Assembly (NCBI RefSeq): GCF_964188315.1
Contig: NC_135667.1
Location: 21,142,001 to 21,206,000, forward strand
Direction: 5' to 3'
Length of the DNA stretch: 64,000 nucleotides
Source: Podarcis muralis
Lineage: Eukaryota
This document shows, piece after piece, positions 990 through 62,047 of this stretch (the first letter of the stretch is position 1; each line of letters opens with the position of its first letter). The notes beneath the pieces were generated by a model, which did no database searches, was not told the DNA's origin, and saw only the letters and a program-made list of their open reading frames with translations. A program made the position numbers and the translations under genes.

Positions 990-5728
<4,739 letters not shown>

Positions 5729-10391: not shown

Positions 10392-10429
10392 TAATGGGAA
10401 TGTAGAATCCGAGTAAAACCTGAGACCCT

Positions 10430-10550
10430 TCATCTCTCAATCTCAAGGTCGTGGGTTCCAGCTCCACATTGGGCAAAAGATTCCTGCATCGCAGGGGTTC
10501 AACCACCTGACTCTCGTGGTTCCTTCCAACTCCACAATTCTATGATTCTC
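10430..10550 (+). mobile_element. tRNA-derived SINE fragment (Squam3-like) with CR1-type tail
   Basis: B-box-like gtcgtgggttccagctccac followed by gggcaaaagattcctgcat...ccttccaactccacaattctatgattc. Confidence 0.7.
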
Positions 10551-11189
10551 GTGTCTCAGGGATAAATATATTGACTAATTTTAAGATTTATTTAACTTAA
10601 TTTCTGGTTGGTAGTCAAAATAGTGTGGATTAGATATTGAGCAAGTTCTGCTGTCCATTGGGATGAAGAATGGTGGATCTGACATCCTCGACTGTTTTCC
10701 TGAATGTGCTTGTGTTTGCTTTAACAGGCAGTGTCACAGGGCTCCCACAGCTGTGCTTGTGGCTACTGCCTAGTTCTCTGTGGTAACGAGACAGACGTGG
10801 CCCTAGCATGAGTGTATTGGCTACCCCTGTGTCCTTGTTGCACATTGGCCTTGTCACCAATGCAGTTCCCTGATTGGGAGGCTGTAATTAACTTTGCTGT
10901 GAATCTCGTCCTTTACTTTTGCTGACAAAAAAATATGAACTGTCATCTCTGGTCATCAGTAGATTGGGCTGGAGGGAGCCACAAACTGCCCCCTCTTTGC
11001 ATGAAAAGTGTTTTGATCTTCCATGATTCAGTAGCCAGCAGTTATGTGTGGTTGAGCCCTATCTTTACTTCTCAGTCATTCACCTTAACCTGAGGCCTTC
11101 ATTCCACGAGCCAAAAAACAGCACACACTGGAGTTCAGGGACTTTTAGACTGTTGAACTCTTGCCTCAAAATTCCTTCTGAATTAGTAA

Positions 11190-38991: not shown

Positions 38992-39001
38992 TACTACTAC
39001 T

Positions 39002-39363
39002 AGGGACGCAGGTAGTGCTGTGGTCCAAACCACAGAGCCTAGGGCATACCGATTGGAAGGTCGGCGGTTCGAACCCCTGCGATGGAGTGAGCTCCTGTTG
39101 CTCAGTCCCAGCTCCTGCCCACCTAGCATTTCGAAAGCACGTCAAGTGCAAGTAGATAAATAGGTACCGCTCCAGCGGGAAGGTAAACAGCGTTTCCGTG
39201 CACTGCTCTGGTTCGCCAGAAAGGGCTTAGTCATGCTGGCCACATGACCTGGAAGCTGTCTGCGGACAAAATGCTGGCTCCCTTGGCCTATAGAGCGAGA
39301 TGAGCGACGCAACCTCAGAGTCATCCGTGACTGGACCTAACGGTCAGGGGTACCTTTACCTTT
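39002..39363 (+). mobile_element. Sauria SINE flanked by (TTA)n and (ACT)n microsatellites
   Basis: gggacgcaggtagtgctgtggtccaaacc head through ggtacctttaccttta tail. Confidence 0.9.
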
Positions 39364-41701
39364 ACTACTACTACACTACACTACACCACCACTACTACTA
39401 CTACTACACCATTACTACTACTGCAACTGCTACTACTAGCACTACTGTACTACTACTGCCACTACCACTGCTAGTACACTAGTACTACTACTACACTCCT
39501 ACTGCCACTTCTACTATCCACTCTACAATTTCCAGAGTGGATTAACAGTCAGCCCCTCTTCTCATGGAACAGCCATGTAATAGATCCTTCAGGAAGGAGC
39601 ATTGGGATTTCAGCAGAGGGGCTGGTCCATTGGGGTGAATGGCATTTCCCCCCCTTAACCTCAGCCTGCCCTCAGCCAACCACCACCTGCCACCCTCTCA
39701 CTTTCCTCTTGCCCAGAGGGTGGCACTGCCTGCCAGTTTCTCCCTCCTTAGTCCCTGCACAACTACTCAGCAGGGAGGAGGAGGAGGAGGAGGGTGGGAA
39801 CTACACTACAATTACTGTGGTGATTTGCCAGCCATCGGCTCTACAGCCAACTATTACTGACCTTTCCTTCTTCCTCCCTCCCATTCCCGATGGGCACTAG
39901 CCACCACTGGCATTCCTCGTTATTCTGTTATAATTTAGCGTTATTCTGCTGTACGGGAATTATGGTTGCATCCGCACGGCATTCCTGGGCTCATTCTGAC
40001 ATTCGGCCTGGATTTAATGTGCATGGGAGAAAATTGTGGTCTTCGGGGCATGAACACCCTAACGTAACGTGTGAACGGGCACTCCAGTGCACGCACATAA
40101 ACCCATGCTACTGCGCCGAAGAGCCAGGTTATCGCGCATACAAAGGCATTGGCTTAGCCTGGGCTGGATTTTTGAACCTGCTTTCAATTCTTAAACCGCA
40201 GATCTGTCCCCCACCCCCCTCTTTTGTTTTATTGTATGGAAAGAGCGTGAAAAGTTAGATGATTTGAGCCAGCTTTGCGGCGACGCCGATCCGGTTTCTC
40301 TTTTCTATTGATAACGTGGCGACGAACGAGATTTTCCAAGGGTTAATATGATAGAGCAGGGGAGCGCGAGAGGGGCTTCGGAGAGGAACCTTCCTGCTCC
40401 GCCTCTCTGGAGATGGAGGTGGGAGGGGGGCAGGGTTTCAGCAGGAGAATCAGGAGCTTGTGCTGGAGGCGAGGCAGTCCTAGGGGTGAGTTAAAAAGAG
40501 GCGCCTGGAAGATGGAGAACGCAGCACCCATAGGGTGCTTTAGCTAGAGAGAGAAAAGGGAAATAGATGTAAATGCATAAAGATCAGGGGGTGCTTAGCA
40601 GCTACCCCTGTGATTATTAATTTCCCAACCATACATGCTTTCTAATCAAGATTGTTACCCTCCACCATCCCACCCGCCCACCCCCGCAGACCAAAATCTC
40701 CTTTAGCTGCTTGAGTTTCAAGCCTGTGCAGCCGAAAGGGATGTGCTTTGCTTTCAGAAAAGTTGTGCAATTCATGCATACAAATGGGCAGGAGAACAGA
40801 CCTTTTATCAGCTAGATAATAAACAGACACCCCTTGGATATCTCTACCATGGACAGAACTGAGTGCAATCCTGAGTCAATGCTGGACTCATAAATACCCC
40901 ATCCCTTGCCTGAGCCATTTCTGGAAACAGTTTGAAGCCAGGTTAAATGCCCTGGATTCCCCCAAACAACTCTGAAAAGTACTGGTGATGCAAAGAGTGA
41001 TGAGGACATTATTAGAAGCCTCTGATTCCTCCCAAGAACTACAATACCAAAAGATCCTTGGGCGGGAGCCCTGAGATTAAACAGGTTTCATTTAAAAGCA
41101 TAGTTTGAGAATGTTGAGAGAGGGCCAACCCTGGTTCACTAGCCTCTCCCTGATCTACACCAATATTTCTTTTTTTAACCATATCTCATCATTTCAGGCA
41201 CAGTTGGTTCTCATCGCTCAGAGATGTCACATTACTCTACAGATCATCATATCCTAATTAGGGCACTCACTTGAGTCAAGAAACGCTAGTTGATCCATTG
41301 TAGCTGTTTTAATTGATCGAATCTGCACCTTCATAAAACAACAGCCCTGGAGGAAAAAACTATTTTGCTCTTCATTTTTCAGTAATGCACACACACAGGC
41401 GCTTTCTTAAAGAGACGTACCCTGCTACGTAAGATAGAAAAGGAAAACGTCTTTCCTGAGATGGTTGCCTGCCAGCACACATGCTGTTTGTAAGTCCTTG
41501 CCTTAAAAAAAATGATTCGTTCACACTTGTTATCGTACAAAATAATTTGTAATTGGCTGATCTGATGTCTATTTAAACGATGTTGCTGTTACGATTCTTC
41601 CATGGCTGCCTCAAATCGCCTCATGTAGTCACTGATGGATGTGAGAGAGGGAGTTTCGGGGAGCAAGAATGCAGGTTTGAAGAGAGTGTGAAGGTGGTAC
41701 C

Positions 41702-44443
41702 ATGAGAGAGAAGATGGCCACAGAGGAGGGGGCCGAGGCAGACCTGGGGGCTGTGACCCAAGCGCCACTGAGCCTGCAAGGCATTAAAATGGAAGAGCAA
41801 TCACCAGCAACCCTCAGAATGGGACAAGCCCTAGAAAAAGCAGGACAGGCTTCTTGTGTCCTTCGTGCCAGGAAGCTCTTGCAATGGAAGGTGTCTCCAC
41901 TGGTCAAGGAGGAGCCAGATGCAGGAAGGATCCAGCACTGGGAGGTCCAAGGCCCAGAGACAGAACATCCCTTTTCTTTTGGATGGGGGAGAGCAAGGCC
42001 CACTGAGGCTGAACCTTGGGATGACATCCTGGCACTTTTTGCTTCCTTTGAGCACGTGGCCTACGCCTGCCGGTGGCCGAGGGAAGAGTTGGTGGCCCGG
42101 CTTTTGCCAGCCCTGGGCGGGGAGGCCCAAGAGGCTTACCTCAGTTTGGACACTAGCGACAGAAGGGACTATGGGAAAGTGAAGGCAGCCATCTTGAAGA
42201 GGGAACCCGTGGTGTCGGAGAAGCAGAGGAGGCACTTCCGGCAGTTCCAGTACCAGGAGTCAAGGGGACCGAGGGATGCTTGCCGGCGGCTCTGGGAGCT
42301 GTGCCGTCGTTGGCTGAGGCCGGAGAGCCGAAGCAAAGAGCAGATCCTGGAGCTGCTGATCCTGGAGCAATTCCTGACCATCTTGCCAGAGGAGGTCCAG
42401 AGCCAAGTTTGGGAGCAAGTCCCAGAAACCTGTGCCCAGGCGTTGAACCTGGCTGAGAATTTTTTGGCAAGGCAGCAGGAGGCTGAGAGGCAGGTACTCC
42501 AGGTGAGAGGATCCTGCAGTTCCTTCTTGATCCCTGGGGTCCCAAGTTGGTCTAACCATGCGGGAAGTTTTCCTTGGGTGCTTACGCGAGGGGAGACAAA
42601 GCACCTCTCTCCCCCTGATCACCATCTAATAAAATCCTTCTCATGTAAAATGTCTTCATAAAGGCAAAGATGGTCAAAGCTGCTTTATGAGCTGTGAAAA
42701 TCTGGTGCACGAAGGCTTGGAATAATATATTTAATTTGTATAGACTTTAGCTGTATGGAGAACGATGTAAGTGCCCAAAGTTAGAAGCAAAGAATGTCCA
42801 TGTCCAAAGACATAAAATCTAAACAGACAGGACACAAAAGGCAGGGAAGAGAATTAGGAGATCAGGAGTGGGGAACCTGCTGCCCCCCAGATGTTGATGG
42901 ACTCTGGCTCCCATCATCCCTGACTACTGGCCATGCCAGCTGGAGACCCCCAAAGAAAGAAGGCTCAGAGCGAGGGGACTGGTGGTGGGATTACGATGGG
43001 AGATCAGAGGGAGAAGAGGGACAGGCTTGGAGGAAGCAGTGTCAGAAGCTGAAGAGGTAACAGGGTTTAGTGAGCTGGGAGAATCTGTGGCAGAGAGAAG
43101 TCGAGAAGCAGAAGCAGGAGAGGAGGGAGGCAGATAAAGAAGTCAGGGGGTCTCCCCTCCTACTGTGACCAGCTCCCTTCCCTCTGGTATCCCAGGAGCA
43201 GAAGGGGTTATGAAGAGGGGGGAGCAGAGACAGGCGTGCCAGCAGAGTCTCAGGTTGCTTGGGAAGGACCCAGAGAGAAGGAGATTTTGGCATCTTCTGA
43301 GTAGGAGCAAAACCTACTCAGAAGAGTTGCTGTGCTCATTAGGACTGGCTTCCCTGAGTTTATAATTTGTATGATTTATTGCTGGCTGGCTTCCTGACAT
43401 TCTGTCATCAAATCATGCTGACTCGTGAGAGTCCCCAGTTCTGTCTCAAACCCAGTGAAGTCCTTTGCTCCCCCAAGCTGTTCCAGGGAGTTTGTGCCAG
43501 GATGTTGAATGCTCATTCCTACCAACCCTGTTCCTGCACTGACCTTCCCTGCAATTTCAGGTGTCAGGGCCATTTGAGGACACCCTCGTGGCAAGGGCAG
43601 TGCTGGCTCCGTCAGACACCAGGCAGAGCCTCTTCTGCAGGAAGGCCAAGCAGGCAGGTGGCGGAGGAGATGCCAGCTCTCTGGGTGAGTAGTTGCTGCA
43701 TTTTTGAAATTCAAGTTTACATAGGCGTTGCCATCTTCACGGGCGCAGAGCTTGTACTGTTGTTTTAACTGTTGAGTGTTGAGTTTAACTTGGAGTGTTG
43801 TTCTAAGTGTTAAGTCGCATGTGATTGGTGTGCCCCCCCCACAAAACCCAGAACTGCAGGTGATCAACTGGGTCACCCTACCCCTACATTTGCCTCCAGC
43901 TCTCCCCTTGAGCTCTCCCCAGTTCTGTAAAATTAGTGTGCAGCAACCCTGTTCACAGAATTTTTTTATGGGGCCATCCATACCAGCTGTTTCCGCCATG
44001 TCTTGGAAACAGCAGTACTATGTTCCAGTTCATGTGATGTCCCTTATTGGAGTTCCACTTCCTGGTTTTCAGGCCAGGGCTGATATCATTCCTTGCTCTC
44101 TTCAGCCAGTTTTGGCCAAACCACACTGCGTTTCTTTTCTGATGCAGGTTCTTCTGACACAGAGGCAACATGGGACTCCCTGGCCGACGAAGGGGGCCCT
44201 GGTGGATGTGGGAAGCGAGACCCTTCTGCAAGAGCAGGTGGGCAGGGTACTAGACTGCTGTTATATACAGGAGACATCCCAATCCTTACAGGGGAGGCTA
44301 ACAGCTTGAGAATTATGCAGCACAAAGTTTTACCTTTGTCATGAACTTGCTAGGCAGTCTTAGGCAAAAGCCACTCTCCGTTTCAGCTCCTATCCCCCAT
44401 GCTCAACACGGGCAAAATAATGTTGAGATTCCTGCATTGCAGC

Positions 44444-44478
<35 letters not shown>

Positions 44479-46124
44479 ACTTGATGACCCTTGGAACCCT
44501 TTCCAATTCTATGATTTTTACAGAGTTGCCATAAGAAAGCCAGTATGGTTAGTGTTGGATTAGGACCTGGGAGACCCAGGTTCAGATCCAGATGCAGCCA
44601 TAAAGCTTACAGGGTGACCTTGTGCCAGTCACACTCATTCTCTCTCCTCTATTCCCCTTTATAATAATAAATAAAAGACTGGGCTCAGGGCGGCTAACAC
44701 CAGATATAAAAACAATTGATTAAAATACAACTTAAAAACAAGATTAAAATACAACATTAAGATGCAGCCTCATTTCAGTAGAAACTCAAATCAAAAACCT
44801 TTTGGGGATGAAAACATCCCCAGGCTACAATTAAAAGGTAAAGGTAAAGGTACCCCCCACTGCCCATATGGGCCAGTCTTGCCAGACTCTAAGGTTGTGC
44901 GCTCATCTATAGGCCGGGAGCCAGCGCTGTCCGCAGACACTTCCGGGTCACGTGGCCAGCGTGACATCGCTGCTCTGGCTTGCCAGAGCCGCACACGGAA
45001 ACGCCGTTTACCTTCCCGCTGGTAAGCGGTCCCTATTTATCTACTTGCACCCGGGGGTGCTTTCAAACTGCTAGGTTGGCAGGCACTGGGACCGAACGAC
45101 GGGAGCGCACCCCGCCGTGGGGATTCGAACCGCCGACCATGCGATTGGCAAGTCCTAGGCGCTGAGGTTTTACCCACAGCGCCACCCGCATCCCTAGGCT
45201 ACAATTAGAGAGCTACAATTCCCTTCAAAGAGGGATTGACTATTAAACCACTCTGGGAATTGAGAGCATTGCGAAGGGAATAGAATGGTTTCCCAACAAC
45301 TCTTTGCACCCTGAATAAACTGCCCTTCCCATAATTATTTATGGAAAGGGATGACCATTTAAAAAGGAATCACTGTGCTTGAGATGTAGGGTGTGAATGT
45401 GGGAGGAAAAAAACGAGAATTAATTGACTTGGCCAGTCATTGGCCAGACGCTACTTGCTACTGGGCTCCCTACTTTCTGCCTTGCTGGTCCAAACGGGCA
45501 CCAGCTGTTCCTTACGTAAAACATTTCTTTTCTTTTTATTCATTAGTGCATTTACACCCCACGCAGGGTTGGCTGGCTGCAAATACTCGGCTGTATCGTT
45601 TAGAGCCTTCCTCCTGCCAGCTTCAGGCCTGCAGTCTTCTTTTCTCTCTGGCAGCTGGTAGCTGTGGAGCGGCGTCCGGATTCTCTCCCCTCCCTGCACC
45701 AACCAGAAATGAAGAGTATGGAGAGAGGCTTGTGGGAGCTGAGGGGCTCCCAGCACACCTGGGCGCCGCCAGCAGGGGCAGCGCGTACCTGTGTTCCCAG
45801 TGCGGGAAAGGGTTTTGTTGGCCGTCGGCGTTGGCCGTCCACCAGAAGACCCACATGGGGGAGAAGCGGCACCGCTGTGCCGAGTGCGGGAAGCGCTTTG
45901 GCCAGCGCAGCCATTTGACGGTGCACCGGAGGATCCACTCGGGAGAGAAGCCGTACGGGTGTCCTCAGTGCGGGAAGCAGTTTGTCGACTCCTCTCACCT
46001 CACCAAGCACCAGAGGACACACTTGGGGGAAAGGCCACCCCACTGCGCTGAGTGCGGGCGAAGGTGTGCCAATAAACGCTCGCTCGTGCAGCACCAGCGA
46101 ATTCACAGCAGGGAGAAGTCCTAG
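41702..46124 (+). CDS. SCAN-domain C2H2 zinc-finger protein with extended Gag-capsid-like SCAN, 4 coding exons, 4 fingers
   Basis: Exons 41702-42502, 43561-43684 (124 nt), 44148-44201 (54 nt; alternative donor after 44237), 45655-46124 (strong polypyrimidine acceptor). Phases 0/1/1 compatible. SCAN core [45 protein letters not shown]; four CxxC..HxxxH fingers. Confidence 0.88.
44447..44477. repeat. (GT)n microsatellite
   Basis: Direct reading. Confidence 0.95.
44834..45195 (-). mobile_element. Sauria SINE (Squam1-type)
   Basis: Reverse-complement body; TSD AGGCTACAATTA at 44822-44833 and 45196-45207. Confidence 0.93.
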
Positions 46125-47699
46125 GCCTGGGGATGAGCCTAGGCCCCTCTTGAGATTCAGGGACTGAGTTATATTGCTGTAAGGCGGAGATTTGGCCCTC
46201 CAGGTATCACTGGTCTGCAGCTGCCATCATCACTAGCCATGCTGGCTGTGACGGAGGACCAAAGGTTCAGTTCCTCATTCCTGGTGTAACTGAAGAGAAA
46301 GGAGCCCCTGTTTCCACCCTTTGTCCACCTGGGGGGAGAAAGCAACAATTCTCAGGGGTCTCTGGGGGTTTTCCTGTTGTTATTCTGTCTCTCACAGCTA
46401 CAATAAACCTACCATTAAAATTATGGACTGGTAATTTCTTCGTCAGAGGGCAAACGGGCAAATTTAGCAGGGGATCAAATACTTTCCCCCCTCTCACTGT
46501 ATATAGCAATGAGGAAGCATGCTTGGGTGAGCGGCTCCTGCAGGTCGGTAGTAGCAGCCAGCTGTGCCTAGCGCTCTGAATATCAAACAGAATTCTTCCC
46601 AGCCCTTGGAGCCCTTTTGGAATGTAAAAAAATATGTTTTCTTTTAAAATTAATGCATTGACAAATAAGTGGATAAGAAGGCGTTCATGTTTCAGCCTAC
46701 TTGAAGCATAAAGGGAATGACAGCTGAACCAGTGTTTGATTTGGCTGTATGTATATCATTCAGTTCTGAAGGTGGGCTGAAGAATTTGTTGTTATGTTAT
46801 ATCTGCCTTCACAACATGAAAGTGTTTGTGACTGGATTTTACCCCAGGTCAGAGAGGTGTCATTGAGGAGAGGAGGTGTGATCAGAATCCATATTTGTTT
46901 CTCTTAAAAACAGGCATGACCTCTAACAGAAGAGGTGATTGTAAATGAACTTAACGGAAGATAGTCAGGTCTACCAGACCAATGGGCCTGTACATTTATC
47001 TCTTCCCCCTCCCCATTACACATCTTTTAGAGTGGTCAAAAAAATTGAGTTCTTTTCCAGGGCCAACACTTGGGCAAAGTGATGTCAGGTGCCCCCCCCC
47101 AATCGATCAGTCCTGGTGGGCTATCCTGACTATGGCAAGGGCAAAAACAGCAGTGGTCTAGGCAGCTCGAGGCAGCCATTTTACGTGGGGCATTGTGGGT
47201 AATTAAAATGGCTGGTGCTGGGCTAGAAAAATAATGATGACAAGCAAGCATCAGCGATGGACTCCAAGGATGCTTGGTAGTTTACCAGCAGGAACTCACC
47301 GTTAAGACAGTGTTCATGGAAGACAATCTTACTTAGCTACGAGCGACTGCCAAAGAAGAAGATGAAGGCGAGGTCCCCCGCTTCAGCGCTGTAGACCATG
47401 GACAGGACTCTCCTGGGAGGTGGTAAACTCGCCTTTCTGGGAGGTATCTTTTTCTTAAAAAATAAATAAATAGATTTTATTAAAGGATTTACTTGGGTTA
47501 CAACAGTTCGTGCATTGTTTCTATTTTCAGTTGGTAGAGTCTTTTCTACAGATCAATTATTCTGGGAGGTTTTTAAGCAGAGAAGTTTTAGTTGAGATAC
47601 CTGCATTGCTGGGGGTTGGAGTAGATGACTCTGGGGGTCCCTTCCCACGCTACAATTCCATGATTCCCTGCCACCCCTGGATCAGCTCAGCCCAAGGAG

Positions 47700-47960
47700 A
47701 CTCCAGGAGAGCAGTGAGAGAGCTAAAAGCAGGATTGTTGCGGGGGGGGGGGGCATTGGGGATTCAAGGGGGCAGCATGAAGACGGCTCCTCTGCAGTGG
47801 GCGCTGGTTGCTTCTGTGGTCTAGAGGTACTTAGAGGTCAGCACCGGACAGCGATGAGGCCGTCTGCATGCTTTGGTTCAGCATCTGTGAGAGAGTGGTG
47901 GAAGCAAGGAGAGTTAGGCAGCAAAGCAGAAGCAGCAAAGGAGGGACGGAGGTGTGGGAA
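47700..47960 (-). pseudogene. Relic third copy of the globin-derived gene (intron 2 remnant, exon 3, 3' UTR)
   Basis: Acceptor ctctcacag then 47884-47821 ATGCTGAACCAA...GTG CTG ACC TCT AAG TAC CTC TAG (VLTSKYL*), out of frame with the acceptor; 3' flank ctccaggagagcagtgagagagctaaaagcagg matches 50042-50072; polyA signal mutated. Confidence 0.8.
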
Positions 47961-48400
47961 TGTTAAGGAAGGCAGGAGGGGATATATTGTTTTGATATCC
48001 CTTCTCACTCATGCTAGTGAATAAACAGCAGAGCACATTCCCTTTGCATCTGACTGGAAGTAAGTTGATGCTTCATTAGAATCCTTTAATTAAGCAATCC
48101 AGTCTGGCTTGGCCAGTCTGAATGGTTCTCGGTAACTTTCCCCTTTACTTCCCTCTTAATATAATAACGACACAACACAGTCTTCTTTAAAAGTAAGATT
48201 TATTTTTTAAACTCACATTCAGTTCACAGCAGTAATCTGAAGGCAGGCTTTATCTTGTGGTTACAGTGAAGAGAAGTCTGAGCTACATCTCAGACTTTCT
48301 GCTTGCGGGCTCCATCCTATGTGAAGGTTGAGTCATGTGCTGGCTAAGAGCCAGAAGAGCGAGAGTCTAAGACATGGATAGGCAAACTAAGCTTAATTTC
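47960..48400. mobile_element. LTR-like fragments truncating the relic globin copy
   Basis: TGTTAAGG...AATAAA...ACGACA segment followed by an opposite-strand segment with tttatt; family not identified. Confidence 0.4.
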
Positions 48401-48789
48401 CCTGTTGTTGTGCAAACCACAGGGGTGTGGGGCCTCCCCCCAAGCCTTGTGGCCCCTCCCACGTCTGTGTCGGCAGCGCTAGTTGGGCTCAGTAAGCAAC
48501 TACCCTCTTGGCTGAAGAGGTAGAAAAAACAATCTGGGCAGCTTGGCAGGTCCCAAGCCCAGACCAGGAGGCTCTTGCTTCAAGGCCCCTTCCCTCAGGC
48601 CATGAGCCCGCTGCTTGGAAGGGCCCATCATTGCAAGGATATCTGCAGCTCCTCCTAACTGACTGATATTCCAAGGACGAAATGAGAGTAGCAGCACTTC
48701 ACCTCTGGCGACTGAGCAACCTCTGATATCGTTCCTTGTTCTCTTCAGCCAGTTTTGGCCAAACCACACTGTGTTTCTTTTCTGATGCA

Positions 48790-48860
48790 GGTTCTTCTGA
48801 CACTGAGGGGACATGGGACTCCCTGGCGGATGTGGGAAGCGAGACCCTTCTGCAGGGGCA
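48790..48860 (+). pseudogene. Orphan copy of SCAN-ZNF micro-exon 3 with a 19-nt deletion (second copy at ~53251-53321)
   Basis: 48730-49060 matches 44080-44440 including acceptor tttcttttctgatgcag and GSSDTEGTWDSL; no SCAN or finger exons accompany it in the unit. Confidence 0.8.
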
Positions 48861-49305
48861 GGTGGGCAGGGTACTAGATTGCTCTGATCTACAAGAGACA
48901 TCCAAATCCTTACAGGGGAAGCTGACACCTTCAGAATTATGCAGCACAAAGGTTTTACTTTTGTCATGAACTTGCTAGGCAGTCTTAGGCAAGCCACTCT
49001 CCATTTCAGCTCCTTTCTCCCATGTTCAACATGAGCAAAATAATGTTCGCATTCCTGCATTGTGGAGGTTGGACTGGGTGCTCTTATTCAGTTTGTTAGC
49101 CTCTTTTGTCCACCATGTTGTCTCCATTGCAGCGGTTCTATGAGGTAGCAAGATGGCTGCCATTGCCACCTCCTATTTCCATAATAATTAATTTTTGTAC
49201 CTCTTCCAACTGACTGGGTTGTTCCAGCTACTCTGGGTGACTTACTAAAGAATTATTGGGCAGAGCCCATGACTGTTCGAGTGTTATAGTAGTGTTTTGA
49301 ATGTA

Positions 49306-49455
49306 CAGTCGTACCTTGGTTTTCAAACAGCTTATTCCTCAAATGTTTTGGTTCCCGAACATTGCAAATCTGGAAGTGAATGTTCCGGTTTCCAAACGTT
49401 TTGGAAGTTGAACGGATTCTGGAATGGATTCCATTCGACTTCCAAGATACGACTG
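49306..49455. mobile_element. Tigger-like MITE (duplicated at 53766-53915)
   Basis: TA-CAGTCGTACCTTGG...CCAAGATACGACTG termini. Confidence 0.85.
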
Positions 49456-49879
49456 TGTAGAGCCGGTGTGGTGAAGTTGGTGGTGTGTGGTTTGAAGACA
49501 TTTGGAAATAATAGAGAAAATGCAGCAAAAAAATAAGACTATCTCCTGGCCAGCCAGAAAATGGGAAGCCCCATTAAATTAATCAATATGAAATGTTTAA
49601 TTGGATTGTTTTTATTTTTTTTATTTTGGATATGACATGGCAAGATTTGAGATGTTATTAATGAAAAAATAATAAAAATTTATTTATTTATTTATTTATT
49701 TTAAAAGAGGCCAATGAGAATCCTTGTCTCCTCTTCTGGTGAGCCTCCAGCTTGGGTCCTGGGCATTGCCGGTTAAAGGGAAGCCCTTCTCAAGAAGCAA
49801 AACGGTGTTTCCTGCCATCTTGGGCCCCTCCAGGGCTGCAAGCTCCCCTGCTATAGAGAGATTCTCCCGTGGAAGGGGC

Positions 49880-49995
49880 ATTCCCAGGAGGTGGTGGACT
49901 CTCCTTCCTTGGAAGGTTTTAAGCAGAGGATGGATGGCCGTCTGCCAGGGACGATTGCGGGGGTTGGTCTAGATGACTCTTGAGTGTCCTTCCCA
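49880..49995 (+). mobile_element. CR1 3'-end fragment (also ~54340-54455 and, more degraded, ~47405-47665)
   Basis: ggactctccttccttggaaggttttaagcagagg...ctagatgac...cccaactcc is the CR1-type 3' terminus. Confidence 0.7.
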
Positions 49996-50072
49996 ACTCC
50001 ATTATTTGCCAGCACCCCCCACCCCGTTCAGCCTAAATAGACTCCGGGAGAGCAGTGAGAGCTAAAAGCAGG

Positions 50073-50078
50073 TTTATT
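50073..50078 (-). terminator. Polyadenylation signal AATAAA of globin-derived gene copy 1 (copy 2: 54533-54538)
   Basis: tttatt on the plus strand ~90 nt beyond the stop codon. Confidence 0.75.
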
Positions 50079-50165
50079 GAGGGCGGGGGGGGGGGGACGT
50101 GGTCGAGGCTGCCACGTCCAGGCGGCACTTCTGCGGAGGGCGCCGGCTCCTTCTCTGGCCTAGCG

Positions 50166-50699
50166 TTATATGGAGATCAGCCCGTTGAGGATGAGCATAG
50201 CCTGGCAGAAGATGTTCACTTCCTCCTGGGTGTCTTGGTTCGGCAGCTGTGGGAGAGGCGAAGGCGGGGGAGCGTTAGAGAGGACGGAGCGGCGCGAAGG
50301 GGCGAAGGAGGGACCCACGTCTGGAGCCCCCGCCCGACGGGGAGGGAGAGAGACTCACCCTGGAGTTGACGGGGTCCGCGAGCAGGTTCTGGGTGGGCAG
50401 GGCGCTAGGGTTGTCGAAGGCGCTGCCGAATGAGTTCACTATGATGCTGCAGATTATCTTGGAGCTGTACTCCCCCAAGGTGACGATTCTAGGGGAGGAG
50501 GGGGAGAAGAAGGTCAGCTTGCGGGAAACGAGAGTAAAGAGGAGAAGGGCCGGGCCATGGCATCGCCACCGGGAGAGGGTCCCTGCCCGACGGGGCGGGC
50601 TTACCTGGGCACAGTCCGGGCGCCGATGTCTGCGGAACGGGACGGGATCTCAGCCCAAACGGGCTGCACGTGGCTCTGGTTGACTCCGCTCAGCGCCAT
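50166..50699 (-). CDS. Alpha-globin-derived heme-less mini-protein, copy 1 (101 aa, 3 exons)
   Basis: Exons 50699-50605 (95 nt), 50488-50359 (130 nt), 50246-50166 (81 nt); GT-AG introns of 116 and 112 nt, phases 2 and 0 as in globins. MALSGVNQSHVQPVWAEIPSRSADIGARTVPR/IVTLGEYSSKIICSIIVNSFGSAFDNPSALPTQNLLADPVNSR/LPNQDTQEEVNIFCQAMLILNGLISI*. Confidence 0.8.
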
Positions 50700-50742
50700 C
50701 CTGCCAGCTCAACCTCTTGGTGCCGTCGGAGCAGCGGCAGCC

Positions 50743-50780
50743 CTTTTATCACCGCCCGCCCTGCCCCCCGGGTGGCGTCT
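50743..50780 (-). promoter_or_regulatory. Globin-like proximal promoter, copy 1
   Basis: Minus strand CACCC (50774-50770), GGGCGGGCGG (50761-50752), GATAAAAG (50750-50743), 44 nt upstream of ATG. Confidence 0.65.
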
Positions 50781-53700
50781 CCCTCGGCCTCTGCCAGCGC
50801 CTCCTTCCCTCCCTCGGCCTCGGCAAGGATCCGGGACGGGGCGCACGAGCCCTGGCAAGTGAGCATCCTCCTCGCAATTCCCGCTGCCTGCTGCCAGGCG
50901 GACACCGTCGAGCATCTTCGCTGGACGCTCCCTGGGCGATGATGACTCGGTAGTCCTGACACCCCCCCCCCCCCGCCCTGTGAGGTCGGCCAGTCAGTCT
51001 TCTACCCCCATTGCTGCGCGCGGCTGAGGGGCACGAGGGGAGGGGAGGGGAGGGATGGCGCCTCGCAGAAAGCCGTGCGCGGAGGTTCTCTCTCAGGTCC
51101 TCTCCTGCGGGGGGTGAGGGTGGAAACTACGACCCAAATCGAACCAAATGGGTCGCTCCTTTGCCCGCCAGGCCAGTTGCCGGCAGGACTGCAGATGCGG
51201 GAGAGAGGAAGGATCAGTCCATCCAGCTGAATGGGGGCATTTGGCCCTCGGCGTCCTCTCACCAAGGGACTCCCAGGAAACTTGGCTGGCAAGAAAGAAG
51301 GGGGGCGGGTCCTTGTGGGGATCAGGACTGGCGAAGCAGCAGGAAAGCAGAGACCGTTCTCCCCATTCCAAGTCACCCAAAAGGGGAACATATTGAGGGT
51401 GGGGCTGAGAATCTAGTTCAGTTTACTTAAAAATACGCAGGACTGAAGAGTTCATGGAAGGCCTAACAGGTTTATGGAAATCAACAAAGGAGCAGATTTC
51501 AAGCAACAACTTGGAACATGAAAAGAAAGAACAACGCTTACCCAATCTATAGTTCAGCCCATCTAATTAGTGAAGTTAAATATATGTGGGAAGCAGACTG
51601 GATTATTAGAAATATATTTTAGGTTACTAAACTGCAGCCCAGTTCCAAACTGACCATTTCCTACCCACCCTGAAATGAGAAAGAAGAATTTTGTTTAATT
51701 GCTTATTTGTTAATTAGGATTCATGGGGAAATGGTCCAGTTTGGAACTGAGCCCCAGTTCAGTAGCCTAGAAATTACTATGTGTTGAGAGTGCAAAGTTG
51801 GAGGCAGCAGGGAGCCCTCAAGACTGTCCTGGAAGGAACTCCAGGGGATGAGCAACCAGGGATGATAAATTGACACCTTCGCCACAGACTGCAAGCAATG
51901 GTTCATTTCCTGTGTTCACCAAAGTGGGTGGTCATTATAGGTGTCCAAGGTGGGTCACCTACACATACATTCCTATCCACACCAAACCAAATGGTTATTA
52001 GAGGTCATTATGCAGGCCATTATGCAGGGACCTGCCCATGTATTCCTATCCAAACACAGACATACACTTTTGGTGCACACTTATGAGTGGCAGAGTGGGT
52101 GTAGGCCACATCTATGAGAAGGTGGAAGTGTGAGTGGCAGCAGAATTCCCCGGTTCAGCTAACCCAGAAGCTAAAAGAAGAGGATCGTCTGTGACCTTGC
52201 AGGCCATTTCTCCCCTTGTCCACCAAAGGCTGAGCATGGAAGCCAGGCAAGAAGACACCTGCAGAAGAGTCTCTTGGGAGGGCAGCTGTGGGGGTAATGT
52301 GGGGCTGGTGCTCTATGCAGGCTGGCCATACTGGGGGAGGGAAGGAGGAGGAGAAGGCGTGAGCACTTTGGGGCATCACAATTTTGCATGACACCCCCCC
52401 CCCAAGAAGACAGGATGTCCCAGACTGTTGACGGGTATGTGCCAGCCACAGACCCTCTAGGTGAGTTTTGCAGACTACCAATTGGGAACCGCTGATCTAC
52501 AGTATTCCAAGTGTTTTTGCACCACAGATTTGTAGAATGGCATTCTGGGAGCCACAGTCTTGTTTTTAAATGCATGTTCAAGTGACCCCCACCCAGCACG
52601 GAATGGGCCTTTTTCACAGCTGCAGAACACAGGGTTGGCCTTTTCATCCAGCTCTCCACTACCATCTTAAGGTCTCGATCCAGATTGGCCACTGCCAGTT
52701 CAGACCCAGGAATATATATGTGTGGAGTTAAGATATGTCTTTTTGCATCACAGAATCATAGAGTTGGAAGGGATCCCGAGGCTCATCGAGCCCAACCCCC
52801 AGCAAAGAAGGAATCTCAGCTGAAGAATCCCAGACAGATGGCCAGCCAACCTCTGCTTTAAAGTCTTGTTGTGCAAACCACAGGGGTGTGGGGCCTCCCC
52901 CCAAGTCTTGTGGCCCCTCCCACTTCTGTGTAGGCAGCGCTAGTTGGGCTCAGTAAGCAACTACCCTCTTGGCTGAAGAGGTAGAAAAAACAATCTGGGC
53001 AGCTTGGCAGGTCCCAAGCCCAGACCAGGAGGCTCTTGCTTCAAGGACCCTTCCCTCAGGCCATGAGCCCGCTGCTTGGAAGGGCGCATCATTGCAAGGA
53101 AATATGCAGCTCCTCCTAACTGACTGATATTCCAAGGACCAAATGAGAGTAGCAGCACTTCACCTCTGGTGACTGAACAACCTCTGATATCGTTCCTTGT
53201 TCTCTTCAGCCAGTTTTGGCCAAACCACACTGTGTTTCTTTTCTGATGCAGGTTCTTCTGACACAGAGGGGACATGGGACTCCCTGGAAGACATGGGAAG
53301 CGAGAGCCTTCTGCAGGGGCAGGTGGGCAGGGTCCTAGACTGCTCTGATCTACAAGAGACATCCAAATCCTTACAGGGGAAGCTGACACCTTCAGAATTA
53401 TGCAGCACAAAGGTTTTACTTTTGTCATGAACTTGCTAGGCAGTCTTAGGCAAGCCACTCTCCATTTCAGCTCCTTTCTCCCATGTTCAACATGAGCAAA
53501 ATAATGTTCGCATTCCTGCATTGTGGAGGTTGGACTGGGTGCTCTTATTCAGTTAGTTAGCCTCTTTTGTCCACCATGTTGTCTCCATTGCAGTGGTTCT
53601 ATGAGGTAGCAAGATGGCTGCCTTGCCACCTCCTATTTCCATAATAATTAATTTTTGTACCTCTTCCAACTGACTGGGTTGTTCCAGCTACTCTGGGTGA

Positions 53701-54629
53701 CTTACTAAAGAATTATTGGGCAGAGCCCATGACTGTTCGAGTGTTATAGTAGTGTTTTGAATGTACAGTCGTACCTTGGTTTTCAAACAGCTTATTCCTC
53801 AAATGTTTTGGTTCCCGAACATTGCAAATCTGGAAGTGAATGTTCCGGTTTCCAAACGTTTTGGAAGTTGAACGGATTCTGGAATGGATTCCATTCGACT
53901 TCCAAGATACGACTGTGTAGAGCCGGTGTGGTGAAGTTGGTGGTGTGTGGTTTGAAGACATTTGGAAATAATAGAGAAAATGCAGCAAAAAAAATAAGAC
54001 TATCTCCTGGCCAGCCAGAAAATGGGAAGCCCCATTAAATTAATCAATATGAAATGTTTAATTGGATTGTTTTTATTTTTTTTATTTTGGATATGACATG
54101 GCAAGATTTGAGATGTTATTAATGAAAAAATAATAAAAATTTATTTATTTATTTATTTATTTTAAAAGAGGCCAATGAGAATCCTTGTCTCCTCTTCTGG
54201 TGAGCCTCCAGCTTGGGTCCTGGGCATTGCCGGTTAAAGGGAAGCCCTTCTCAAGAAGCAAAACGGTGTTTCCTGCCATCTTGGGCCCCTCCAGGGCTGC
54301 AAGCTCCCCTGCTATAGAGATATTCCCCCGTGGAAGGGGCATTCCCGGGAGGTGGTGGACTCTCCTTCCTTGGAAGGTTTTAAGCAGAGGATGGATGGCC
54401 GTCTGCCAGGGACGATTGCGGGGGTTGGTCTAGATGACTCTTGAGTGTCCCTCCCAACTCCATTATTTACCCGCACCCCCCACCCCGTTCAGCCTAAATA
54501 GACTCCGGGAGAGCAGTGAGAGCTAAAAGCAGGTTTATTGAGGGCGGGGGGGGGGGGACGTGGTCGAGGCTGCCACGTCCAGGCGGCACTTCTGCGGAGG
54601 GCGCCGGCTCCTTCTCTGGCCTAGCGGTA

Positions 54630-55157
54630 TTAGAGCACCGCGTTGACGATGAGAGCAGCCTGGCGGAAGATGCTCGCTTCCTCCTCGGTGTCTTGGTTCG
54701 GCAGCTGCGGGAGAGGCGAAGGCGGGGGAGCGTTAGAGAGAACGGAGCGGCGCGAAGGGGCGAAGGAGGGACCCACGTCTGGAGCCCCCGCCCGACGGGG
54801 AGGGAGAGAGACTCACCCTGGAGTTGACGGGGTCCGCCAGCAGGTTCTGGGTGGGCAGGGCGCTAGGGTTGTCGAAGGCGCTGCCGAATGAGTTCACTAT
54901 GATGCTGCAGATTATCTTGGAGCTGTACTCCCCCAAGGTGACGATTCTAGGGGAGGAGGGGGAGAAGAAGGTCAGCTTGCGGGAAACGAGAGTAAAGAGG
55001 AGACGGGCCGGGCCATGGCCTCGCCACCGGGAGAGGGTCCCTGCCCGACGGGGCGGGCTTACCTGGGCACAGTCCGGGCGCCGATGTCTGCGGAACGGGA
55101 CGGGATCTCGGCCCAAACGGGCTGCACGTGGCTCTGGTTGACTCCGCTCAGCGCCAT
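54630..55157 (-). CDS. Alpha-globin-derived heme-less mini-protein, copy 2 (99 aa, 3 exons)
   Basis: Exons 55157-55063 (95 nt), 54946-54817 (130 nt), 54704-54630 (75 nt). Exons 1-2 encode the same protein as copy 1; exon 3 is LPNQDTEEEASIFRQAALIVNAVL*, followed by TAC CGC TAG (YR*). Confidence 0.8.
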
Positions 55158-55200
55158 CCTGCCAGCTCAACCTCTTGGTGCCGTCGGAGCAGGGGCAGCA

Positions 55201-55238
55201 CTTTTATCACCGCCCGCCCTGCCCCCCGGGTGGCGTCT
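55201..55238 (-). promoter_or_regulatory. Globin-like proximal promoter, copy 2
   Basis: GATAAAAG (55208-55201), GC box and CACCC at the same spacing as copy 1. Confidence 0.65.
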
Positions 55239-57236
55239 CCCTCGGCCTCTGCCAGCGCCTCCTTCCCTCCCTCGGCCTCGGCAAGGATCCGGGACGGGGC
55301 GCACGAGCCCTGGCAAGTGAGCATCCTCCTCGAAATTCCCGCTGCCTGCTGCCAGGCGGACACCGTCGAGCATCTTCGCTGGACGCTCCCTGGGCGATGA
55401 TGACTCGGTAGTCCTGACACCCCCCCCCCCGCCCTGTGAGGTCGGCCAGTCAGTCTTCTACCCCCATTGCTGCGCACGGCTGAGGGGCACGAGGGGAGGG
55501 GAGGGGAGGGATGGCGCCTCGCAGAAAGCCGTGCGCGGAGGTTCTCTCTCAGGTCCTCTCCTGCGGGGGGTGAGGGTGGAAACTACGACCCAAATCGAAC
55601 CAAATGGGTCGCTCCTTTGCCCGCCAGGCCAGTTGCCGCCAGGACTGCAGATGCGGGAGAGAGGAAGGATCAGTCCATCCAGCTGAATGGGGGCATTTGG
55701 CCCTCGGCGTCCTCTCCCCAAGGGACTCACAGAAAACTTGGCTGGCAAGAAAGAAGGGGGGCGGGTTCTTGTGGGGGATCAGGACTGGCGAAGCAGCAGG
55801 AAAGCAGAGACGGTTCTCCCCATTCCAAGCCACCCAAAAGGGGAACATATTGAGGGTGGGGCTGAGAATCTAGTTCAGTTTACTTAAAAATACGCAGGAC
55901 TGAAGAGTTCATGCAAGGCCTAACAGGTTTATGGAAATCAACAAAGGAGCAGATTTCAAGCAACAACTTGGAACATGAAAAGAAAGAACAACGCTTACCC
56001 AATCTATAGTTCAGCCCATCTAATTAGTGAGGTTAAATATATGTGGGAAGCAGACTGGATTATTAGAAATAATTTTAGGTTACTAAACTGCAGCCCAGTT
56101 CCAAACTGACCATTTCCTACCCACCCTGAAATGAGAAAGAAAAATTTTGTTTAATTGCTTATTTGTTAATTAGGATTCATGGGGAAATGGTCCAGTTTGG
56201 AACTGAGCCCCAGTTCAGTAGCCTAGAAATTACTATGTGTTGAGAGTGCAAAGTTGGAGGCAGCAGGGATGCCCTCAAGACTGTCCTGGAAGGAACTCCA
56301 GGGGATGAGCAACCAGGGATGATAAATTGACACCTTCGCCACAGACTGCAAGCAATGGTTCATTTCCTGTGTTCACCAAAGTGGGTGGTCATTATAGGTC
56401 TCCAAGGTGGGTCACCTACACATACATTCCTATCCACACCAAACCAAATGGTTATTAGAGGTCATTATGCAGGCCATTCTGCAGGGACCTGCCCATGTAT
56501 TCCTATCCAAACACAGACATACACTTTTGGTGCACACTTATGAGTGGCAGAGTGGGTGTAGGCCACATCTATGAGAAGGTGGAAGTGTGAGTGGCAGCAG
56601 AATTCCCCGGTTCAGCTAACCCAGAAGCTAAAAGAAGAGGATCGTCTGTGACCTTGCAGGCCATTTCTCCCCTTGTCCACCAAAGGCTGAGCATGGAAGC
56701 CAGGCAAGAAGACACCTGCAGAAGAGTCTCTTGGGAGGGCAGCTGTGGGGGTAATGTGGGGCTGGTGCTCTATGCAGGCTGGCCATACTGGGGGAGGGAA
56801 GGAGGAGGAGAAGGCGTGAGCACTTTGGGGCATCACAATTTTGCATGACACCCCCCCCCAAGAAGACAGGATGTCCCAGACTGTTGACGGGTATGTGCCA
56901 GCCACAGACCCTCTAGGTGAGTTTTGCAGACTACCAATTGGGAACCGCTGATCTACAGTATTCCAAGTGTTTTTGCACCACAGATTTGTAGAATGGCATT
57001 CTGGGAGCCACAGTCTTGTTTTTAAATGCATGTTCAAGTGACCCCCACCCAGCACGGAATGGGCCTTTTTCACAGCTGCAGAACACAGGGTTGGCCTTTT
57101 CATCCAGCTCTCCACTACCATCTTAAGGTCTCGATCCAGATTGGCCACTGCCAGTTCAGACCCAGGAATATATATGTGTGGAGTTAAGATATGTCTTTTT
57201 GCATCACAGAATCATAGAGTTGGAAGGGATCCCGAG

Positions 57237-60082: not shown

Positions 60083-60451
60083 TAAATAACCACCCTTAGT
60101 CCCACTCTGCTTCCTGCGGATTCCGGCCTTTAGACCTTAGTCTGATTTCCTTCCTGCCTTTAAAGCAGGACTGCTTTGTTTCATTTGGACATTAGGGCAC
60201 ATTGGGACAGTCCCTGCTTCCTGACTGCAGCGACCCCCCTTGCCTTTTAGAAAGCACTGCAACGCTTTACAGACAATTAATACTCAAATTACAAGGTTGT
60301 ACTGGTGCACGCAATATTGAACTGGTTCAGGTGTATTTAATTATCTTCCCTTGAAGTTTTGCCAGTGCAGACAGTGCTGAGCTACGCGTATTAGCTGAAC
60401 TAAGGGGCCGGTGTTTCATTGATCAAGGTAGGCAACAGTCTAGATCACATC

Positions 60452-62047
60452 ATGTCTGGTCAAGGAAACCAAGCAAATCCCACTGCATCTGGGGGGCCTA
60501 ATGGGAATCAGGAGGATCCACAACCCTTTATAATCCCAAGTAACCCTCAAGCCTTGGCAGAGTTTTTCACTGCTTTCCAGGATTTCTATAGGAACAGGTC
60601 CTCTGGACAAGTGGCAGCGGCACCGCCAGCAACAGTGGCAGGGGCACCATTGGCACCAGTGCTATCGCCAGCAGCACCGATGGCAGCGGCACCAGCGGTG
60701 GCAGTATCGGTGCCAGGGGTATCGAGAGCGTTCACACAGGACTTCATTCCGGATACACAGCCCAACGAGGTGCAGCTTCCCGGCACTTCGGCGGTCACGG
60801 TGGCAGCTCTGAAGGCGGCCAAGGAGTCAACACCTCGGCCCAAAAGGAATACCCGGGCACAGTCGGCCGCCCCGACCAAGGCAAAAGGGGCCCCAAGGGG
60901 GGGTAAAAAGGGTAAGGCTTCTGTGCATTGTCCAGGGGCGGCTAATCTGCAAAAGGATCCAGGTGTTCCAAGTCTCTTTCAGAACCCACCACCGCAGGCG
61001 GCAGCAGTCGAAGATGCATCGAGTTCTACCGACGAAGAAGCCCCAGGGCCGCAAGCAGCACAGGCGACCACAGTGCCGGATCAAGCCATACCCGAGGCCC
61101 AGTCAGGGAAGAGGAAGGAGAAGAGAAAACACACCTCAAAGAAGAGTAAGAAGAGTAAGCATTCGGACTCAGAGGAGGATTCAGGTACCTCTTCTTCTTC
61201 TGATTCGGATAGCGATGTCCCCAGGGAGGAGTACTGGGGTCACGGGGAGGATTGTGTGGGTCTTCCTTTATGGGTACATGAGAGAAGGGCCAATTCCTAT
61301 AGAAAATCATTTAATGGGACCCTTGAGTGGAAGAACGGCGCCTTGGTACAGGATGTTAAAACGTCCACTAATCTGTCTACGGACGTTATCGTAGGCGCTC
61401 ACTTATCTCAAAAAAAGAGGAATAAGATCCTCAACGGGGAGTATATAGATATATTCAGATTGCTACCTCCAGCAAAGATTATGGGTAGAGGGGAAAAGAG
61501 GCGCCAGCATGGTAGACGCAAGTACAGGACACCTAGAGCGGAACGCACTTTTGACAACTGGATGGACGGGTCCCAGGTGTTCATGGGCGTCGTCAGCGCG
61601 GCTTATCCGAAGCGCGCGATGCATTTGATTGCGTACCAGTCTCATGTTAGGAGGGCGCGGGATTTAGCAGGAGATATTGCTGCCATTAATTATGATGAAG
61701 ACTTCCGTAGAAATGCGTCGCTGTTGTCATCCACCCGCTGGGATCTGAGGGACCAAAACTATTGGTCAGAGCATGTGGGCCCCTTCGTTGAGAAGAAGCC
61801 TCAGGAGTCCTCAAAACCTTGGAAGACCGCTGCGAAGCAGAGGCGACTGTGTTGGGAGTACAACAAGGGGGTTTGTGCACGGGCTGTTTGTAAGTACAGC
61901 CACGAGTGCGATAAGTGTCTGGGTAACCACCCAGCCACTGCCTGCGTTAAAGGGAGGCAGCCCTTTCGGGGTGGGAGAGGTGCATACAACCAGGGACCTA
62001 GGGGTGGCCACGGAGCACCATTTGGACCCCAGGGAAACAGGCAGTAA
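60452..62047 (+). CDS. Ngaro gag-like ORF1
   Basis: First ATG 60452 (MSGQGNQANP); Ala/Pro-rich, K/S/D-rich middle, C-terminal Cys/His knuckle CWEYNKGVC...CKYSHECDKC..NH...C and RGG-rich tail; uninterrupted. Confidence 0.88.
   Translation: MSGQGNQANPTASGGPNGNQEDPQPFIIPSNPQALAEFFTAFQDFYRNRSSGQVAAAPPATVAGAPLAPVLSPAAPMAAAPAVAVSVPGVSRAFTQDFIPDTQPNEVQLPGTSAVTVAALKAAKESTPRPKRNTRAQSAAPTKAKGAPRGGKKGKASVHCPGAANLQKDPGVPSLFQNPPPQAAAVEDASSSTDEEAPGPQAAQATTVPDQAIPEAQSGKRKEKRKHTSKKSKKSKHSDSEEDSGTSSSSDSDSDVPREEYWGHGEDCVGLPLWVHERRANSYRKSFNGTLEWKNGALVQDVKTSTNLSTDVIVGAHLSQKKRNKILNGEYIDIFRLLPPAKIMGRGEKRRQHGRRKYRTPRAERTFDNWMDGSQVFMGVVSAAYPKRAMHLIAYQSHVRRARDLAGDIAAINYDEDFRRNASLLSSTRWDLRDQNYWSEHVGPFVEKKPQESSKPWKTAAKQRRLCWEYNKGVCARAVCKYSHECDKCLGNHPATACVKGRQPFRGGRGAYNQGPRGGHGAPFGPQGNRQ

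Follow-up and report, generated by a model that had tools for sequence, protein, structure and literature searches.

Haem-less descendants of an alpha-globin gene form a tandem, probably protein-coding family in Podarcis lizards

To our knowledge, vertebrate globin duplicates are known only to retain haem-based functions or to die, and the globins are a textbook case of conservative family evolution. The subject of this text is a three-exon gene of the wall lizard Podarcis muralis, LOC144325098 (copy A), which lies on the minus strand at 50699-50166 of a window of 64,000 nucleotides (the whole stretch of DNA analysed; OZ076966.1:21,142,001-21,206,000, assembly GCA_964188315.1), together with its tandem relatives. 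Closest in the literature to a haem-less alpha-globin remnant that was retained is icefish Hb-alpha-3'f, which lacks the iron-binding portion and was proposed to be still expressed in a non-oxygen-carrying role (PMC6861181). Unlike this single 3' deletion remnant, the Podarcis family keeps the whole gene layout, comprises at least eight copies and carries two hypervariable segments. Bacterial non-haem globin-fold proteins (the RsbR N-domain and photoglobin) share globin descent, loss of haem and gain of another role (PMC8717448); these are complete globin folds, ancient and prokaryotic, whereas the Podarcis family is truncated, young and specific to a vertebrate lineage. A survey of lacertid haemoglobins including P. 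muralis lists canonical alpha-A/alpha-D and beta genes only, which evolve under purifying selection, with no diversifying sites in the alpha genes, and does not mention the family (bioRxiv 10.1101/2025.06.04.657811), which, unlike those canonical alpha genes, forms a tandem array with hypervariable segments. Full-text searches of the literature likewise found no description of it. We estimate the probability that copy A belongs to a functional, protein-coding tandem family derived from alpha-globin in Podarcis at roughly two in three.

Read directly from the sequence, copy A has an open spliced frame of 101 amino acids. The coding part of exon 1 (50699-50605, 95 nt) starts with ATG and ends with the AG of an arginine codon split AG/GT, and is followed by intron 1 (50604-50489, 116 nt, GT-AG, phase 2), exon 2 (50488-50359, 130 nt), intron 2 (50358-50247, 112 nt, GT-AG, phase 0, conserved among copies) and exon 3 (50246-50166, 81 nt, 26 codons and TAA). 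A TATA-like box (GATAAAAG) lies upstream at 50750-50743, and an AATAAA polyadenylation signal, kept in all copies, at 50078-50073. A first-pass annotation of the window, made from its letters, had listed the three exons, GT-AG sites, phases, lengths and both signals, all of which were read again in the sequence. It had also suggested a previously undescribed lizard gene family, which agrees with the literature searches; the gene itself, however, is already annotated, since the spliced product is identical to the 101-amino-acid RefSeq "uncharacterized protein LOC144325098" of P. muralis (P0001), so that the locus is undescribed rather than unannotated. This identity was found via a word-seeded protein search, with an open frame of the second copy in the window (copy B) as the carrier for exon 2.

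The family descends from an alpha-type globin gene. It shares with the alpha-A and alpha-D genes of sauropsids a structure of three exons with a 95-nt coding exon 1, short introns in phases 2 and 0, and a location in CpG islands, and the layout, including the split arginine at the end of exon 1, recurs in all eight P. muralis copies described below. A profile of nine family proteins matched 106 chains of the Protein Data Bank (PDB), all of them alpha-type haemoglobin and colinear with it (best single chain, E=6e-6). The P. lilfordi family member P0008, which has the family-specific exon 1 and Pro at F8 and matches P0001 with E=5.5e-14, reached E=1.5e-8 against PDB alpha chains over nearly its full length, including the terminal VLTSKYR. 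P0001 by itself remained below significance (E about 0.1), with all of its top 10 matches being alpha chains in register; the alignment consists of two colinear stretches, 3-34 on residues 2-33 and 49-78 on residues 73-102. Significance was therefore obtained because the family profile or P0008 served as query, P0001 alone being insufficient. Single exons gave nothing significant against PDB and Pfam, and at 26-43 amino acids these pieces are uninformative; no Pfam family was matched at E<=10 by the three single exons, P0001 or P0002, such that Pfam Globin (PF00042) was not reached. A sub-threshold match of P0003 to DUF4702 (E=0.019) was discarded as noise. The alpha-globin origin put forward in the first-pass annotation is thus borne out by the profile and P0008 matches, the gene layout and the fossil codons described below; of the globin profile search it had proposed as a check, the match to alpha-type PDB chains stands, and a match to Pfam Globin does not.

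The haem ligands are lost in the family. Its protein is colinear with the A, E and F helices, the FG corner (DPVN) and the G/H tail of alpha-type haemoglobin, but is without the proximal and distal histidines and the CD region and is about 40 residues shorter; an AlphaFold2 model of low confidence predicts no globin fold. In copy A, exon 1 aligns without gaps with alpha-globin residues 2-33, with codons 1-26 (within 50699-50605), which derive from the A helix, being nearly invariant across the family. The conserved tail of exon 2 (NPSALPTQNLLADPVNSR, 50412-50359), which covers the F helix and FG corner, aligns with residues 72-99 and places Pro opposite His87 (F8) in hidden Markov model (HMM) alignments; the motif LP[AT]QNLL was found in 12 of 12 copies having the exon-2 tail, with Pro at F8 in every copy. 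At E7, copy A has Tyr39, opposite His58 by the offset of the HMM alignment, and the histidine codon CAC is left only in the P. lilfordi copy lilX. The gap-free exon 1 and both histidine replacements had been predicted from the sequence and are upheld by these alignments.

Two further losses had been predicted at the same time, and here the outcome is mixed. The CD region, including the position of Phe CD1, is absent from the mRNA, as seen in a 20-residue shift in offset between the two aligned stretches. This agrees with the prediction of about 20 missing C/D codons, of which, however, about 10 were not deleted but remain readable in the 3'-terminal part of intron 1: the last 30 nt before its AG (50520-50491) read as the fossil exon-2 codons KLTFFSPSSP (compare globin (R)MFLSFPTT), and the former exon-2 acceptor CAG/G is now CAAG in copy A. 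A loss of about 13 helix G codons from the start of exon 3, in turn, has to be withdrawn. The exon-3 start (LPNQDTQEEVNIF) is retained and colinear with alpha residues 100-112, the profile maps with its positions 55-100 to residues 72-117, and the alignment of a retrocopy concurs; the loss, of about 14-16 codons, lies in the GH corner and H helix. Codons of the old C-terminus, Tyr-Arg-stop or VLTSKYR, are still readable after the new stops, and the exon-3 stop of copy A is a TAC-to-TAA change at the former Tyr codon, with the fossil CGC TAG following at 50165-50160.

About 100 kb of chromosome were covered by the loci of related RefSeq proteins and of one neighbouring retroelement protein, and contain at least eight full tandem copies over about 65 kb, plus several fragments. 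In kilobases of the correspondingly extended window, these are A at 50.0-50.9, B at 54.5-55.4, H at 67.4-68.3, C at 87.4-88.4, D at 96.6-97.5, E at 98.4-99.3, F at 103.6-104.5 and G at 112.0-112.9. Copy B (55157-54630, minus strand; exons 55157-55063, 54946-54817 and 54704-54630) is open with 99 amino acids and, as had been remarked for both copies in the window, keeps start, splice and polyadenylation signals like copy A. All eight retain the start codon, GT-AG at both introns and open frames of 99-108 amino acids with no disabling lesion, and their exon-2 lengths (127, 130, 139, 142 or 151 nt) all equal 1 modulo 3. P. lilfordi has a four-copy cluster beside a SCAN-domain zinc-finger gene, and the two clusters are taken as syntenic because such a gene flanks the array in both species. 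Three of these four are open, bringing the open copies to 11 of 12 across both species (93-108 amino acids, GT-AG at both introns).

The alternative that survives best is an unprocessed alpha-globin pseudogene array, maybe still transcribed from a surviving promoter, in which open frames reflect shortness, recent duplication and gene conversion and no protein function exists. Neutral decay of this kind would equalize the divergence of exons and introns. As mean pairwise difference among the seven P. muralis copies analysed first, divergence was 0.083 in the 5' flank, 0.043 in exon 1, 0.047 in intron 1, 0.354 in the 5' part of exon 2, 0.055 in the exon-2 tail, 0.070 in intron 2, 0.223 in exon 3 and 0.051 in the 3' untranslated region (UTR). 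Codons 1-26 of exon 1 fall, together with the two introns, the exon-2 tail and the UTRs, within about 2-7%. A 15-nt sliding profile leaps to 0.34 from 0.05 precisely at the acceptor of intron 1, falls to 0.03 within exon 2 at the start of the F-helix tail, climbs once more in exon 3 and drops to 0.02 past the stop, such that the shifts in divergence sit at a splice acceptor and a stop codon. Hypervariable region 1 comprises the E-helix-derived 5' part of exon 2 (50488-50413), which holds the Tyr at the E7 position, and starts already in the last six or so codons of exon 1 (3' end of 50699-50605); hypervariable region 2 is exon 3, derived from the G and H helices. As the last six codons of exon 1 are variable, the conserved intron 1 splits a single hypervariable coding region. 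In every pair tested, including pairs between species, the variable coding parts were 4-8 times more diverged than the flanking introns and UTR (Fisher P 2e-4 to 1e-17).

In snake-venom phospholipase A2 and conotoxin families, introns, UTRs and one constant coding part are far better conserved than the exon parts for the variable surface, in tandem arrays with birth-and-death evolution, and the genes encode secreted proteins that have signal peptides and a disulphide framework. The Podarcis genes resemble these families of 'accelerated evolution' in having coding segments that are more diverged than the adjoining introns and UTRs; unlike them, they encode proteins that are without a hydrophobic N-terminus, have few, variable cysteines and are mostly acidic.

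Indels and substitutions follow the frame as well. All four coding indels are multiples of 3 (21, 9, 12 and 3 nt), most of those in non-coding sequence are not (1, 7, 8, 10, 16, 22 and 31 nt), and the net length changes thus preserve the frame as the first-pass annotation had stated. Hypervariable region 1 (26 codons) has accumulated at least 119 substitutions (parsimony minimum) with 0 stops, compared to 3.9 expected (P=0.02). The pooled ratio of non-synonymous to synonymous proportional differences (pN/pS, NG86) was 0.45 in the exon-2 tail, 1.48 in hypervariable region 1 and 3.35 in exon 3, where pS (0.079) is about that of intron divergence and pN is 0.265. Omega (dN/dS) was estimated by one-ratio (M0-type) codon likelihood in an own implementation, with F3x4, F1x4 and equal codon frequencies, on segments that are short and recombining. 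For the 44 constant codons, it was 0.24 under F3x4 (P=0.002 versus omega=1) and 0.46 under F1x4 (P=0.08); for hypervariable region 1, 1.27 (F3x4, P=0.44), 2.67 (F1x4, P=0.0012) and 3.4 (equal, P=7e-5); and for exon 3, 2.1 (F3x4, P=0.11), 3.5 (F1x4, P=0.004) and 4.3 (equal, P=0.0008). Point estimates in the variable parts thus exceed 1 under all codon-frequency models, with a significance that, at 24-26 codons, depends on the model. The dN/dS comparison, which had been proposed across lacertid orthologues for distinguishing gene from pseudogene, gives in the Podarcis copies values below 1 for the constant parts (0.24-0.46) and above 1 for the variable parts (1.3-4.3).

The frames and splice sites are intact, and the contrast in rates is bounded by coding sequence. 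In combination with the frame-preserving indels and an omega below 1 in the constant parts, this variability bounded by coding sequence is the strongest argument that selection acts on a translated product. It favours the claim that the gene is a non-oxygen-binding globin derivative rather than a decaying pseudogene, as the first-pass annotation had it, and renders the pseudogene array unlikely.

Several observations nevertheless weigh against a functional protein family, and a number of them are what a pseudogene array would lead one to expect. The haem ligands have been lost along with much of the fold, and Pfam Globin is not matched. The C-termini are ragged: independent stops arose just ahead of the old stop, and the long exon-3 form of three P. 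lilfordi copies (W, X and Y) contains a premature stop followed by the fossil tail MLT[SA]KYR and its stop codon, which suggests weak constraint. The P. lilfordi copy lilY is clearly degenerate, and an exon-3-like relic with 3' UTR lies at 47910-47687 (minus strand) in the window, frameshifted and with one frame ending in VLTSKYL before a stop. Omega above 1 is non-significant under F3x4 in both variable regions; hypervariable region 1 is near saturation, and its pS (0.25) is raised as well. The AlphaFold2 model, computed from a nine-sequence alignment, has a mean predicted local distance difference test (pLDDT) value of 56.7 and a predicted template modelling score (pTM) of 0.23, too poor for a fold search. 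The gene tables of loci L001, L008, L003 and L004 list no gene for copies B, H and D (54461-55358, 67435-68333 and 96593-97510, window-extended), which have intact frames of 99, 100 and 106 amino acids, respectively, and good splice sites. Support for expression comes indirectly, from RefSeq isoform models and a processed retrocopy in P. lilfordi rather than from present-day copy A. The reading of the promoter as erythroid is one of motif inspection, and three P. lilfordi copies have a different upstream sequence. Finally, relatives were confined to Podarcis in the searches, so that these provide no gauge of long-term retention.

It is improbable, in our view, that the pattern results from neutral concerted evolution, in which conversion homogenises the units while segments that diverged early resist and drift, their overlap with coding sequence being accidental. 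The copies are clearly mosaic. Between D and F, intron 1 is identical and hypervariable region 1 nearly so, but exon 3 differs by 29%; H combines an exon 2 of the A/lilX type with an exon 3 of the E type; and nearly all differences between A and B lie in exon 3, where B has 13 nt differences and a 3-nt deletion, with exons 1 and 2 identical at the protein level. Among the exon-3 tails, the 3-nt deletion with TAA is common to B, D and lilZ, and an ending in SI before the stop to A, C, E, F and H. That exon 3 of A or B underwent a burst of new mutations was ruled out, as both tail types are found in other copies; because the types are shared, including with lilZ, the difference is attributed to an exchange of exon-3 types between paralogues that predates the species split. 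The synonymous divergence of 0.25 in hypervariable region 1, well above that of the introns, is likewise as for a segment escaping homogenisation. Concerted evolution leaves unexplained, however, the island edges at the intron-1 acceptor and the stop codon, the conserved intron 1 dividing the variable coding region, the frame-keeping indels within the islands, and an exon 3 with intron-like pS but a pN of 0.265.

That the loci act as DNA or RNA (non-coding RNAs, promoter or CpG-island elements), with the reading frame irrelevant, is very improbable: promoter, introns and UTRs are the best-conserved parts, every copy is a CpG island and humans are known to have globin pseudogene RNAs with a function (HBBP1), but a recent origin and conversion suffice to account for non-coding conservation among young paralogues, and frame preservation, omega below 1 in constant coding sequence and coding-bounded variability favour a translated product.

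Past transcription of the family is recorded in a retrocopy in P. lilfordi. Mouse psi-alpha-3 is a processed, intronless alpha-globin pseudogene with homology upstream of the normal cap site. The locus L005 (OX395140.1, about 9.29 Mb, on another chromosome than the cluster) is similarly an intronless copy of alpha-globin type that extends upstream of the cap site; unlike mouse psi-alpha-3, it stems from the haem-less family, with a family-type exon 1 and Pro at F8, and not from a working globin gene. It spans L005:9807-10653, encodes the open, 98-amino-acid P0008, is flanked by a 13-nt target-site duplication (AAGGTAATCAGGG, 9807-9819 and 10641-10653) and terminates, some 20 nt past AATAAA, with a short A-run. 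The lack of introns, the target-site duplication and the A-run together imply that a family mRNA was transcribed and spliced in the ancestral germline; since the retrocopy begins 181 nt upstream of the ATG, the source transcript must have started upstream of the TATA-like box. It keeps an earlier state of the family, with Pro already at F8 but the older exon-2 acceptor, RLFAASP and the VLTSKYR tail. A tRNA-like short interspersed element is inserted in its 3' UTR (10316-10561). RefSeq gives three isoforms for LOC144325095, of which X1 and X2 (P0012 and P0010, 231-232 amino acids) begin well upstream in a different frame and continue through intron 1 into exon 2. Both resemble models with a retained intron more than real proteins, and hint at an upstream transcription start like that of the retrocopy's parent.

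Upstream of copy A, CCACCC (50775-50770), GGGCGGG (50761-50755) and TGATAA overlapping the TATA-like box (50751-50743) lie within 50775-50743 on the minus strand. By inspection against established motif definitions, this may be an erythroid-type CACCC/GC/GATA arrangement; the motifs are shared by copies A-F of P. muralis. In the P. lilfordi cluster, three of the four copies (L006 2660-3660, 14420-15340 and 18730-19700) have other sequence upstream of about -40, with a ATTAAAAGG/ATAAAAAGG box in place of the arrangement. Each gene copy lies within a CpG island (1-1.5 kb for A and B; observed/expected ratio 0.72-0.84, versus 0.04-0.47 in the background), which would fit a locus that is unmethylated in the germline.

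The predicted proteins have net charges of -10 to +2 and are mostly acidic, with 0-3 cysteines that vary between copies. No hydrophobic core is present in the N-terminus (MALSGVNQSHVQPVWAEIPSRSADIG), as judged by inspection and hydropathy and not by a dedicated signal-peptide predictor. The suggestion of a secreted or antimicrobial peptide precursor is therefore not sustained, and an antimicrobial role was rejected as unsupported given the charge and the lack of a signal peptide. The only helices in the low-confidence AlphaFold2 model, at residues 36-55 and 79-100, coincide with the two hypervariable segments. Inspection of these segments revealed constant hydrophobic positions, namely I/L/V at the old E11 and E15, an aromatic residue, and I-F in exon 3, a pattern consistent with helices whose packing stripe is constant and of which one face varies.

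Copies A and B each occupy one of two 4.4-kb tandem repeat units (48405-52780 and 52866-57236) that are 98.4% identical. The relic at 47687-47910 is older than the species split, because the P. lilfordi gene model P0009 (145 amino acids) ends in AEPKHADGLIAVRC, the same peptide as that of an open reading frame (ORF) over the P. muralis relic (47838-48008, minus strand); P0009 probably splices a family copy onto the orthologous relic and is an annotation artefact. The gene adjoining the array in P. muralis (41702-46124, plus strand) encodes a SCAN domain (Pfam SCAN, E=8e-37) and C2H2 zinc fingers (zf-C2H2). Between copies B and H lies a retroelement (60419-63695, plus strand) with a gag-like ORF of 531 amino acids and a reverse transcriptase ORF (RVT_1, E=1e-12), both annotated as genes. 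Two interspersed repeat families were recognised within and near the duplication units (about 360 bp, 77-88% identical), the first at 44080-44439, 48723-49062 and 53184-53523, and the second at 44834-45197, with copies at 25092-25447, 7472-7820, 4549-4896 and 39000-39365. ORFs of 186 amino acids at 48500-49060 and 52961-53521 overlie one of these two families. The window further contains a run of 141 N at 27560-27700.

Beyond the two species, no family member outside Podarcis was found in an exhaustive profile search of 1.84 billion representatives or a word-seeded search of 5.8 billion proteins, which on their E-value scale recovered no globin either. A 1735-amino-acid bacterial S-layer protein (P0011, E=1.6e-4) was dismissed as a repeat artefact.

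For the protein-coding family that we favour, the following history can be proposed. The ancestor would have retained a globin gene's promoter region and CpG island, its layout of three exons with their intron phases, and its poly(A) site, and the haem pocket would have been lost by exchange of His for Pro at F8 and for Tyr at E7, by partial deletion of the CD region with part of it intronized through a shift of the acceptor, and by shortening of the GH/H region. The products would be proteins of about 100 residues without signal peptide, mostly acidic, if, as we infer, they are made. Purifying selection appears to act on two constant parts, residues 1-26 and a segment of 18 residues from the F helix and FG corner, and the two hypervariable parts are the sole predicted helices. 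New variants could arise as genes duplicate, as paralogues swap their exon-2 and exon-3 modules, and as amino acids are rapidly replaced. The proteins may be small intracellular binding modules, in which a fixed partner is bound through the constant N-terminal and FG-corner parts, with the variable helices meeting fast-changing targets in some genetic conflict. Beta-type globin would be an obvious candidate for the constant partner, as the DPVN contact of the FG corner is retained.

Our best guess for the site of action, judged from sequence features, is the nucleated red cell, because the promoter inherits the CACCC, GC-box and GATA-TATA arrangement; a role in the germline or in reproduction has about the same likelihood, because the retrocopy shows past germline transcription. 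Any one specific cellular role must be considered unlikely at best. A defence or decoy function in red cells, in which a hypervariable two-helix intracellular family generates variants by module shuffling against blood-cell parasites or erythrocytic viruses, is a long shot, and would, if true, be a novel kind of cell-autonomous immunity on a globin scaffold.

In a well-studied lizard model, the analysis flags RefSeq loci listed as 'uncharacterized' and three unlisted intact copies. A haemoglobin alpha duplicate appears here to have taken a third path, in which the haem pocket was shed, the regulatory and exon-intron shell was kept, the gene multiplied, and two of the old helices became surfaces that change fast. 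Intermediate stages are still readable in fossil intron codons, in fossil tails past the stops and in a retrocopy that holds an earlier state. If the proteins are made, the family would represent a clean and datable birth of a new protein family from a housekeeping gene.

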